The notes beneath the pieces were generated by a model that ran no database searches, was not told the origin of the DNA, and worked only from the letters and a program-made list of their open reading frames with translations. A stretch of DNA of 62,803 nucleotides, counting the filler, from Guillardia theta CCMP2712 (Eukaryota; Protista; Cryptophyta), in NCBI RefSeq assembly GCF_000315625.1. It is 4 parts of 4 records of this genome, joined end to end, with 100 filler letters (N's around TTAATTAATTAA, not from the genome) between each part and the next. Parts side by side here need not be neighbours in the genome. Positions count along the whole stretch, not along the records: positions 1 to 25,638 come from NW_005434606.1; 3 more parts are not named here. One strand, written 5' to 3'. The position numbers and the translations under genes are program-made. Positions 5,500-12,857 of the stretch are shown in pieces (position 1 is the first letter of the stretch; each line of letters starts with the position of its first letter).

Positions 5500-8400
5500 C
5501 TAGGGTGGCTTGCAGTATGGTCGTTTCCTCCAGTCGAACTCGGCGAACTTTATCCTGTACAATCAGGTAGAAGGCAGTGAGATGAAGGCAAGAAGCATTG
5601 TATTGCACATCATCATCATCAGCAGCAGCAGCATGATCATCACATCAGAACACCCACAAACTGTTGTCGTTGGCTTCCTCAACATGACCATCATCACCAC
5701 AACCACCACCACCATGATCATTACAAAATCATCATCATCATCATCTCCATCATCTCTTTCTCTATCTCCATCATCATCATCATCGTGATATGTCCGGGTT
5801 ATTGGTAGCCTCACTTGACGGAGTCGATGTCTCGGAGAACTTTATCCTTGAGAGTGAGTCCTCGTCCTCTCAGCGAGGTGTTGTTGCTGCTGCAGAAGAG
5901 ATCCGCTATGAACTTGACGACCTGAACATCATCAGGGAGGAGAAACTTCATGATGACAAGACCGACCGACGACATGTCGTCGCCGAAGTCCTTGATGTTC
6001 CACTTGAAGATCTTGGGGAGGTGCAACGTTGCGCTCCCGTTCCTGCATGGAAGAAAGGGTTAGGAGGGAGGAGAGGAGAGGAGAGGAGAGGAGAGGAGAG
6101 GAGAGGAGGGGAGGGGAGGGGAGGGGAGGGGAGAGGAGAGGAGAGGAGAGGAGAGGAGAGGAGAGGAGAGGAGAGGAGAAGAGAAGAGAAGAGAAGGAGA
6201 CGTAGAGGAGGACATCACTTGTCGTAAGTAATATTTACATCCCGCGCGCAAGTCTCCAGACAAGCTCGATCTAGTTCTTCATCCTGCAAGACTCTCAGAT
6301 GACTGACGAGAAACGAGCCCCTACTCCTCCTCACTGTGACTCCCCACACACTCACACAGACTTTCCTCCCTCAACTTTCCCTTGCTCTACCTCCCCTCTC
6401 ATACACACATACATACACCCACACTCCTTCCCGCCTCCCCCACACTCGCCCTCTTCCTCTCCTCCTCCTCCTCGTCGTCGTCCTTTCCCCTCTCATGCTC
6501 GTGCTCGTGCTCGTGCTCGTGCTCCTCCTTTTCCTCTCCTCCTTTTCCCTCTCCTCCTTCCCATTCTCCCACCAGATGCTCGACGGTGAAGACGCGGACG
6601 TCCGGGCTCGAAACGCATCCGAGGGAAAGTGCGAAGTGCATGCGAGGATCAACATGGCAGGGGCCAGCCCCTGCGTCGTGTGAGGAGAAAGAGGACGCGG
6701 ACGAGGACGAAGAGATCAGGACAAGGAGAAGATGAGGACACAAACGAGGAGGAGGAGGAGGACGAAGAGGACCAGGAGGACGAGGAGGAGGAGGAAGAAG
6801 AGGACGAAGTAAGTACCATTGGTTGATGTCTGCATGCTCGGTTTCAACTTGAGAACCCGCTGCTGCATCGTTTGCATGCAGTAGAATTGACTTCCAACCT
6901 GCAGACGGTGAGAAAATGACGAGAACGAGGAGGAAAAGGAAGCGAAGGACTGTAGGAATGGCAGAGGAGGAGGGAGGGAGCGAGGGAGACGAGGGAGAGA
7001 GAGGAGGAACGAGGGAGAGAGAGGAAGAGGGGAGGAGGGAGGGAGATTCTTTGGGGTGACTGAGTTGAGAGAAGGGAAGGGTTGATCTCACTCTGTACTG
7101 GTGCAGCTTGATGAGTTTCGATCGCATCCATCGCAGTGACTCCCAACTTGCAGTGCCTGAGGGAGGAGAAGTGAGGAGGAGGAGGCAGAGCAGAGATGAA
7201 ATGAGGATCGAGAAGGAGAGAGAGGTGGTTCCGGGAGATGAGAGGGGAGAAAGAGAGGAGGAGAGAGGAGGGTGGGTGTCGGAGGTGAGGAGAAACGAGG
7301 AAGAGGAAGGATGCGAAGCGTCGGAGCAGCAGCAGCAGAGGAGGAGGAGGAGGGGAAGGGAAGGGGGGTTGAAGGGGGGTTGAGGAGGAGGCTTACCTCT
7401 GTGAATGTGCGTGTGGATCATCAGAGCGTTGTGAAGGTTCAGGAAGAAGGCAATCTGCTCCTTTAGTCAAACTGGACGATGTAGAAGGAGCAAGGAGCAG
7501 GAGCAGGGGCAGGAGCAGGGGCAGGAGCAGGGGCAGGGGCAGGGGCAGGTTCAGGTTCAGGAGCAGGAGCAGGAGCAGGAGCAGGAGCAGGAGCAGGAGC
7601 AGGAGCAGGAGACCTCGGCAGCAGGAGCAGGAGCAGGAGACCTCGGCTCGTTTGAAAAGCAAGCTAATGTCAACCATTTGAAGTTCTTCCGAGAGCTGAG
7701 AAATCGTGTGTGACAAAGACGAGGAAACTACCCCCTCCCCCTCCCCCTCCTCCTCTCCCTCCCTCCCTCCCTCCTCTCCTCTCCTCTCCTCTCAAATTCT
7801 GGCCCTCCAATCTCTCCCCAATTCCTCGCACTTTCCCTTTCTCTCTCGCTCTTCTCTTTCTACTCCCTCCCTCCTCCCTGCCCGCCTCTCATTCCCCCCG
7901 TCACTCTGCTCTCCCCGCCCACCCCTCTCCCCTCCTCACCTGGATGAAGGATTTCCAGTCCACGTTTCGGCTGTCTGGGGGTACCTGAGTGACTGAGCAA
8001 TGCAGATCCAGCGCCTGCTCCAAGATCAGCCCCGCCCTGTCCTCCTCCTCCTCCTCCTCCTCCTCCTCCTCCTCCTCCTCCTGTCTTCCTCCCTTCCTTT
8101 CGCCCTTCCTGTNNNNNNNNNNNNNNNNNNNNNNNNNNNNNNNNNNNNNNNNNNNNNNNNNNNNNNNNNNNNNNNNNNNNNNNNNNNNNNNNNNNNNNNN
8201 NNNNNNNNNNNNGGAGGAGGAGGAGGAGGAGGAGGAGGAGGAGGCAAACAGTGCGAGTGGAACGACCTTCTCATCTTCTCTGAACCTGAAGAGAGAGTTT
8301 GGATCCTCGAAGACCTGCAGGCAAAAGATGAGATGAAGGGGAGGAGGAGGAAGCGAGGGAAGGATCAGCGAAGGTGACGCACAGTGAAGTTTGTTCGTGA

Positions 8401-11400: not shown

Positions 11401-12857
11401 CACATCTGATCATCGATGTACAGGCCGTTGCCAGAGAAGGACAGGCCTCCCATGGAGCTGCGAGACAGCTGCTTCGACCTCCTCTCCTCATTCCAGTGCT
11501 GGTTCATCTGCTCTATCATCTTCTGACTCTCCTGCAGCTGCTGGCGAAGTCTCTGCACCTCCAGGTCTGCCTCCGACACGGGGCTCGGCACCTGCTGCCC
11601 GGCCACCTGCCGCCGCAGGCGCTCGATCTCAGCTCGCAGCTCTCGGATGATTCTGTCGTTGGTGTCCTCGTTGACGATCGCGTTTGTCTTGATCCTCTTC
11701 GCCCTGCTGGCATACTGCAGCGTCGACAAGGTCTCTTCGTAGTTGATGTCTGCTGGGCTGATCGCCGCGAGCATGATGGTCTTGGCGTTTCCTCCCAGGG
11801 ACTCCTTGAGCAGCCACGTGAGCTGCGAGTCTCGGTAGGGGATGTGTATCTTCTCCTTCAGATTGGATTGAGACTGCTTGTAGAGGGCGAAGATGCAGTT
11901 GGCAAGAGCTGACAGTGACTTGTTGATCGCGATCCCCTCCTTGAACCTCGCTTGCTCGACGCCTGACAGCTGCCGGCTCGACTGCCTCTCGCTGCCTGCC
12001 AAGTCCACCAGGTTGATATGGCTCACTTTCTTGGTCTCCCTTGCGAAGCCTGTTTGCAGCTGCTCCAGCGAAGTCTGACAGAACTTGATGGAGAAGATGG
12101 TGTGAGCCCTCGAAGAAGCATCGTTCATGTTCGTCGATGCCACACTTCGCGCCCGATATCCGAAGGCCAGTTGTCGTTCAATCTCAGCATAGCTGTTTGC
12201 TGTCATGGCCGTCAAGCCCTCAATGTAAGGGCCATGCTTCGGGTGTTCGCGGACACGAAGGTCAGAGTTTGATCGCCCGCTGAGCGAGGGGTTCAACAAG
12301 TCGAAGATCTTCTCCTTGTAAATCTCAGTCATCGACGTCACAACCTCGAAAGCGACGTTCTCGTCTTTCTGCGATTCCATGTACTTGAACAGATCTTGCA
12401 CTACCCGCGGAACTATTCCCTTTTCATCCTCTTCACCTATCATGCTGTACGACTTCCCTGAACCTGTTTGCCCATAAGCAAAGAGACAAACATTGTAACC
12501 AGACACGGCATTGTCCAAGGCAAATTTTCCGAGCTCGTTGTAGACTGTCGCTTGAGATGCATAGTTGTCGCAAGAGCGATCATGAGACCAGTAGCAATGA
12601 TCAAAGCTAAAGAATCGCTTCCCATCTTCGTTGGCTCCTCTATCCCTTTCGTTGTTTAGAACCACTCTGTTCCCCTCCATCTCCACGCAGCATCTGCAGC
12701 CTCTAGCAGCCTCTCGAGCATTGAATGGCCTCACCCTGATCGCTACTCGAATGCTCTCACCATCATCTCTCCTCGATATTCCACCACTCCCACCACTTCC
12801 TCCTCCTCCTCCTCCTCCCTCTCCTGTTCCTCCTCCTCTTCCCGATCGCTCAGCCAT
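5500..12857 (-). CDS. Kinesin-3 family motor (KIF1/KIF13/KIF28-like) with FHA, PDZ, DEP and C-terminal DUF547 domains, multi-exon
   Basis: Motor motifs [37 protein letters not shown]; neck coil; LVNLNEDP plus FHA; PDZ (GIGVLV...[13 protein letters not shown]). The ORF splices (intron 9327-9402) into DEP exons and then DUF547 exons ([15 protein letters not shown]; [21 protein letters not shown]; [13 protein letters not shown]; [17 protein letters not shown], stop at 5500-5502). 10082-10285 is an in-frame intron read through by the ORF track. Confidence 0.85.

Follow-up and report, generated by a model that had tools for sequence, protein, structure and literature searches.

The cryptophyte Guillardia theta CCMP2712 possesses a nuclear gene for a predicted kinesin-3 whose tail ends in DEP and DUF547 domains, a cassette that is most likely a shared module for engaging cargo or membranes and that also terminates a myosin of the same organism. 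The gene occupies positions 12857-5449 on the minus strand of a 62,803-nucleotide (nt) stretch of the genome (assembly GCF_000315625.1; the whole stretch is hereafter the window), within the part derived from NW_005434606.1, and comprises about 16 exons. Taken as a whole, the explanation that we favor, namely a spliced kinesin-3 gene with a DEP-DUF547 tail that acts as a cargo or membrane selector in common with a myosin, has in our estimate a probability of roughly 0.6.

The motor is encoded in a minus-strand open reading frame (ORF) of 1152 codons at 12857-9402. The initial annotation proposed that the gene runs on past 9399 by clean splicing into exons that complete a DEP domain and add a DUF547, and the transcripts bear this out. 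The TGA at 9401-9399 that closes the ORF overlaps a GT donor (CAC AG followed by GTGA), and contigs of three studies (X1, X2 and X3) remove the intron at 9402-9327 (76 nt), exactly the first intron predicted, joining the ORF in frame to what follows. The transcript data cover 5300-10000 and consist of one raw RNA-seq run (X19) and a single contig from each of these three other studies (X1, 4347 nt; X2, 2122 nt; X3, 4211 nt), which align as 9403>9326, 9207>8803 and so on to 5554-5449. The parts skipped in the contigs all read CT..AC on the plus strand, that is GT..AG on the gene strand, and it is from the removed introns together with a poly(A) tail that the mRNA origin of X1-X3 follows. The length of the X1 contig implies a start roughly 2.6 kb ahead of 10000 in mRNA terms, so that a single molecule would carry DUF547 at its end along with most of the motor domain. 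The raw X19 reads, limited to the last few hundred transcript bases, back the two 3'-most joints. Downstream of the long ORF lie 13 small exons with GT..AG at every border, after which the gene closes at a TAG (5502-5500), followed by AATAAA at 5469-5464 and, 15 nt past it, a poly(A) site at 5449 marked by the T-run that ends the X1 contig. The exon lengths sum to 4320 nt, equivalent to 1439 codons plus the stop, and the frame closes. All the peptides from which the initial annotation had pieced together its exons were found on the minus strand by three-frame translation, which also showed the hallmark motifs of DUF547. Moreover, the window exons are colinear with a 1472-residue protein of the cryptophyte Baffinella frigidus (P0002) from its residue 6 to the last, with per-exon tblastn E-values of 1e-4 to 1e-9, which excludes a chance match.

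A predicted kinesin-3 with a PDZ-DEP-DUF547 tail

The predicted product of about 1439 residues combines, in this order, a kinesin-3 motor, Kinesin_assoc, FHA, PDZ, an acidic linker, DEP and DUF547, in agreement with the architecture that had initially been proposed. The motor domain (12737-11691; PF00225, 356.6 bits, above its cut-off, residues 41-389) is intact in its motifs as translated, with the P-loop GQTGSGKS, switch I SSRAH and switch II DLAGSE. It is followed by the neck coil and Kinesin_assoc around 11543-11331 (PF16183, 60.3 bits) and by an FHA domain at 11321-11118 (PF00498, 40.7 bits, residues 513-580), both above their cut-offs, and then by a PDZ domain at 10691-10476 (residues 723-794), which exceeds the cut-offs of two models (PDZ_6, 28.7 bits against 27; PDZ, 24.7 bits against 23.2). 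Some 300 residues of acidic low-complexity linker separate it from the DEP domain. Loop 12 of the motor holds three lysines, a weak cluster with no poly-K run. The combination of the motor with Kinesin_assoc and an FHA domain after the neck points to kinesin-3, the order being that of KIF1A/UNC-104, KIF13, KIF14, KIF16B, KIF28 and the fungal Klp8/Kin3; as supporting evidence, the matches from outside the cryptists in a word search with residues 400-830 were all of the KIF1/UNC-104, KIF14, KIF16B, KIF28 or Klp8 type. The difference lies in the tail, where the G. theta protein carries PDZ, DEP and DUF547, as opposed to the PH (PF00169), PX (PF00787), KIF1B/DUF3694 regions or CAP-Gly of the other members. 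The initial annotation had given PH, PX or CAP-Gly as the usual kinesin-3 endings, and PH or PX tails were indeed what the ordinary kinesin-3 matches of this search carried.

The tail domains are divided over many small exons, and Pfam scans of these one by one were mostly blank, as expected for pieces of 16-40 residues. For DEP (PF00610, cut-off 32.7 bits) only exon 3 gave a match, a weak one of 13.8 bits; the orthologs P0002 (35.6 bits) and P0004 (46.8 bits) exceed the cut-off, and the window exons over the DEP region are 62-87% identical to P0004. An AlphaFold2 model of the Baffinella tail (P0002:1130-1472) has a mean predicted local distance difference test score (pLDDT) of 90.5 and a predicted template modelling score (pTM) of 0.83. 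Its first ~105 residues match the DEP domain of pleckstrin (2cso; Z 8.8, root-mean-square deviation 2.5 A over 85 residues), and also that of P-Rex1 (Z 7.8) and of Fzd4-bound Dishevelled (Dvl DEP, 8wma; Z 7.6), such that in this ortholog the domain is predicted to adopt the winged-helix-like bundle with a beta-hairpin arm that typifies the DEP fold.

With DUF547 (PF04784, cut-off 27 bits), exon 7 alone scores 27.9 bits, the neighboring window exons together reach 46.3 bits, and the orthologs give 65.3 and 88.2 bits. Folded by itself, the domain is modelled as a mixed alpha/beta unit (pLDDT 90.4, pTM 0.86). Foldseek comparisons of this model with the PDB gave E-values above 0.6 throughout, VIA-align reached no more than Z 4.1 over 48,161 chains, and a DUF547 profile run against the PDB sequences had 0 matches. 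The ESM Atlas returned solely further DUF547 proteins, some of which also carry DEP, glutaredoxin or Lzipper-MIP1. The modelled domain thus appears to have no solved structural relative within the searches run, which we do not take as a claim for a new fold. In alignments of 45 and of 60 members, two Asn residues, a His and a Tyr are invariant, with Arg, His, Phe, Gly, Pro, Trp and Asp at nearly invariant positions; window exons 7, 8, 10 and 12 keep all these family residues (N, N, H, Y; R-x-H-F; G..S.P; W..DF).

The same tail occurs elsewhere in the Cryptista. The word search recovered four close relatives (P0001-P0004), namely the Baffinella protein P0002, annotated as hypothetical, with Kinesin, FHA, PDZ, DEP and DUF547; P0003, a Goniomonas transcript (MMETSP0114) of 1366 residues with Kinesin, PDZ and DUF547 and no DEP call; P0004, a 727-residue fragment covering PDZ, DEP and the beginning of DUF547; and P0001, a 915-residue fragment. 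The kinesin-tail architecture is, at the level of sequence, conserved across Baffinella, Goniomonas and environmental sequences. The novelty initially claimed for the fusion accordingly holds in one respect and fails in another: it is not unique to G. theta and was already present, unnamed, in public protein sets, as the Baffinella hypothetical protein and the Goniomonas MMETSP transcript; on the other hand, we found no paper linking kinesin and DUF547, those with both words being plant expression studies, and this kinesin-3 tail type is one that we found described in no paper.

DEP-DUF547 cassettes on other motors and their proposed function

An exhaustive search with the Baffinella tail recovered 1642 representatives at E-values up to 0.001. 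Those ranking highest below the orthologs are proteins of the architecture Myosin_head-DEP-DUF547 (P0057, P0058, P0062, P0063, P0068, P0102, P0207 and P0220), among them one from Goniomonas avonlea (P0058). G. theta encodes such a myosin on the minus strand at C135:70876-67298 (L030, about 3298-6973), with a head scoring 678 bits (PF00063) and a tail 68% identical to that of P0058. These cryptist myosin tails are the closest relatives of the kinesin tail (38-41% identity), but they are attached to an actin motor and come with neither FHA nor PDZ, whereas the present protein is a microtubule motor. Two broad classifications of myosins treat those of G. theta as orphans, with no mention of DEP or DUF547 in their main texts (PMC3942036, PMC5583752). 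A third motor-like protein with the cassette, here behind a divergent kinesin-like domain, is encoded at C2:1133789-1138442 (loci L005-L010 and L029) and corresponds to P0080 (UniRef A0A7S4JD35), to which the locus is 98-100% identical over most exons. Its motor is 25% identical to that of the window gene, with switch I and switch II both degenerate in appearance, and it may be inactive. In a tree of 45 tails (LG+G4 model with SH-like approximate likelihood-ratio test, SH-aLRT; the midpoint root serves the drawing only), a branch with a support of 98 has the tails of kinesin-3 and myosin on one side, and the P0080 tail joins at 94. From this grouping, the motor-borne cassettes look like one lineage that has moved between motor heads.

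The same pairing of DEP and DUF547, in the same order, is found in the class IV glutaredoxins of plants and green algae (GRX-DEP-DUF547; GRXlike1/2 in Arabidopsis), in line with the occurrence of the two domains together with glutaredoxin that had been noted initially. In the kinesin, by contrast, the N-terminal partner is the motor and the glutaredoxin domain is lacking (no PF00462 match in the long ORF or the orthologs), and the cassettes of the motors branch separately in the tree. According to a 2026 review (PMC13621322), the plant GRX-DEP-DUF547 proteins have yet to be characterized, and DEP domains target proteins to membrane sites. An Arabidopsis MIP1-DUF547 protein devoid of transmembrane helices localizes to a polar plasma-membrane domain (2026 preprint, bioRxiv 10.64898/2026.08.17.745151).

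In addition to these, the genome of G. theta has further DUF547 loci, about eight in all. Two near-identical copies roughly 10 kb apart (C116:126524-127236 and 136910-137622) are probably a tandem duplication; others lie on C30, C39 and C148, with the C39 copy, which has several stops, possibly a pseudogene. Just upstream of the kinesin-like gene on C2 there is an ORF with a YccF domain (PF03733; L029:4234-4860).

On the explanation we favor, the motor would dimerize via its neck coil and walk to microtubule plus ends, as do other kinesin-3s, with the tail picking what is transported. DEP would anchor the tail to a membrane of acidic lipids or to a receptor within the membrane, as in Dishevelled, pleckstrin, P-Rex and RGS proteins, PDZ would bind the C-terminal peptide of a partner, and DUF547 would provide a specific contact with a ligand or partner. 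Because the myosin carries a sister cassette, microtubule and actin motors might both serve one and the same site on cargo or membrane. The role in engaging cargo or membranes that the initial annotation suggested for DUF547 gains support from the presence of the cassette on two further proteins, a myosin and a second kinesin-like one, though it still reaches beyond direct observation. In its strong form, in which DEP-DUF547 is a dedicated cassette for recognizing cargo or membranes on the kinesin-3, the kinesin-like protein and the myosin alike, with one site handed between microtubule and actin tracks, we offer the idea tentatively, at somewhat less than even odds. The MyTH4-FERM cassette, which is common to myosins VII/X/XV and the kinesin KCBP, engages membranes or cargo. 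The likeness to it resides in a single tail cassette being placed on both actin and microtubule motors; the domains are unrelated and the analogy is one of logic only.

Several considerations weigh on the other side. We infer a role for DEP-DUF547 at cargo or membranes from the company that these domains keep, and this company is mixed: among the matches scanned, DUF547 is often fused to RasGAP, protein kinase, glutaredoxin, response regulator or potassium channel modules, and also to PH, AIR9 and TPR39, so that a signaling or ligand-sensing role fits as well as docking. The invariant polar N, N, H and Y of DUF547, with the near-invariant R, H and D, could mark a catalytic site. Kinesin-3 tails are, furthermore, known to autoinhibit their motors. 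These features together suit a different proposal, in which DEP-DUF547 is a payload or a regulator, with DUF547 being an enzyme or small-ligand sensor that is either carried to plus ends or folds back to switch the motor. We nevertheless consider this proposal doubtful: one cassette borne by three distinct motor heads, its copies grouping in the tree, is what cargo-selecting tails usually show; DEP is best known as a module for docking to membranes or receptors (PMC13621322); and the fold searches recognized no catalytic fold. Other reservations concern the footing of the cargo-selector explanation itself. The placement in kinesin-3 is by domains and similarity search, and the statements on DEP and the folds are taken from orthologs that are 52-86% identical per exon. 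The labelling of X1-X3 as RNA is a guess, backed by their spliced and polyadenylated state, and exon 6 and the intron within exon 1 were placed by reasoning, the former from homology, borders and length and the latter from borders and composition.

Exons, introns and the assembly gap

The gene begins with exon 1a (12857-10286, ATG at 12857), which encodes the motor, Kinesin_assoc, FHA and PDZ (Pfam). Here the long ORF as initially given requires a correction, as the CT-rich segment at 10285-10082 is very probably an additional in-frame intron (204 nt, GT..AG) to judge from its borders and composition; its removal drops an odd Leu/Pro/Ser-rich stretch of 68 residues for which the orthologs have no alignable sequence. 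Exon 1b (10081-9403; covered by contigs at 9403-10000) encodes the acidic D/E/S-rich linker, and its last ~16 codons (9449-9403) open the DEP domain, the exon matching residues 452-483 of P0004, in which DEP begins at residue 468, at 87.5% identity. The next intron, 9402-9327, contains the TGA of the ORF and is removed at the joint 9326/9403 in X1, X2 and X3. Its sequence reads in frame straight into that stop, and contigs drop rare variants; hence one might envisage that part of the transcripts retain it and yield a shorter kinesin (motor-FHA-PDZ-linker) ending at the TGA, with both forms coexisting. This appears improbable, in that no contig or read covers the intron, the three studies having only spliced forms, and the shortened product would end inside the DEP domain.

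Past this junction, homology and the transcript contigs together define exons 2 (9326-9207) and 3 (8803-8722), both within DEP, the latter spanning profile positions 36-56 at 86% identity to P0004, and exon 4 (8314-8267), which ends the domain. Between exon 4 and exon 5 (8014-7940; the DEP-DUF547 linker) lies an assembly gap at 8113-8212, which the transcripts bridge. The contigs run from the one exon to the other with 84 letters that are absent from the window: in X3, letters 705-832 (128) fall between the pieces aligned to 7940-8016 and 8720-8800, and subtracting exon 4 (48 nt) and the shared edges leaves 84 nt. P0004 has exactly 28 residues between the parts that match exons 4 and 5. As the 84 extra nt equal these 28 residues, the mRNA is continuous and in frame across the gap, which hides one unassembled exon of 28 codons. 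A search for this exon through the whole assembly matched only the paralogous myosin locus, indicating that it is unassembled and not misplaced. Exon 4 might alternatively be read in frame right through the gap, and this we reject, because the flanking Ser-/Glu-rich codons are absent from the transcripts, which have 84 other letters instead. The open frame through the 100 N is an accident, given that the gap length is arbitrary and the flanking codons are intronic. Any gene model here must therefore bridge an assembly gap that hides an exon.

The DUF547 region starts in exon 6 (7695-7642), which is recognized by homology and GT..AG borders and whose presence in the transcript is deduced from length, the contig holding 52+2 unaligned letters, exactly its size. 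Exon 7 (7454-7397; the Pfam-matching exon, also in the contigs) bears the core motif with the invariant N, N and H. The remaining exons likewise have the support of homology and contigs: exon 8 (7156-7092), with the invariant Y in HQYR; exon 9 (6898-6817); exon 10 (6670-6573), with the motif DPRMHFAL...G..SSP; exon 11 (6283-6219); exon 12 (6042-5967), another DUF547 motif exon; and exon 13 (5921-5815), for which the joint 5917/5963 is also seen in raw X19 reads. Exon 14 (5554-5449) holds the last 17 codons, the stop and the 3' untranslated region with its polyadenylation signal, and its joint at 5553/5814 is present in X1-X3 as well as in 4 raw X19 reads of RNA.

The gap in the middle of the locus, and the general point that a contig spanning two genes does not show a single transcript, might suggest that a kinesin gene and an adjacent DEP-DUF547 gene were falsely merged by contig assembly or by scaffolding over the N's, the initial annotation having named transcripts ending near 9399 with a separate DEP-DUF547 gene as the outcome that would speak against it; this is scarcely credible, since the ORF meets the next exon in a clean in-frame GT..AG splice within DEP that is the same in all three studies, the missing 84 nt correspond exactly in length to the ortholog, and a kinesin motor and DUF547 are parts of a single product in both the Baffinella protein and the Goniomonas transcript. 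A separate DEP-DUF547 gene is rejected on the spliced contigs and on the DEP domain straddling the first junction, for with DEP starting ahead of that junction no separate gene can begin after it.

Several other features were observed in and around the locus. The introns at 8860-9190, 8410-8700 and 7470-7600 are rich in trinucleotide repeats (CTG/CTC/GCA types), which create long poly-Leu, poly-Ala, poly-Cys and poly-Ser ORFs on both strands with no evidence of genes, and several transcript contigs of other loci end loosely at 8337, 8354, 8868 and 8873. Just past the poly(A) site, 5300-5456 is also covered by contigs, with a loose end at 5356, which suggests that the 3' end of a neighboring transcript lies very near that of the kinesin gene. 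Just upstream of the latter, a minus-strand ORF of 180 codons (13927-14469) shows an STT...EEE pattern resembling that of ADP-ribosyltransferases, with an acidic repeat after it, and gave no Pfam match at E-values up to 0.001.

Implications for DUF547

For the kinesin-3 family, the protein represents a new tail type, and the cassette would be a second example, after MyTH4-FERM, of one common to actin and microtubule motors. The main value of the finding, though, is as a handle on DUF547. That three different cytoskeletal motors in one lineage end in DEP-DUF547, in mutually related copies, offers a concrete clue that can be tested, and the first functional one, for an uncharacterized domain found in more than 1600 representative clusters, including the plant class IV glutaredoxins and the MIP1-type proteins. 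If the cassette is indeed one for recognition, this would give the widespread DUF547 its first function, as a domain that recognizes a partner or a lipid at the membrane.

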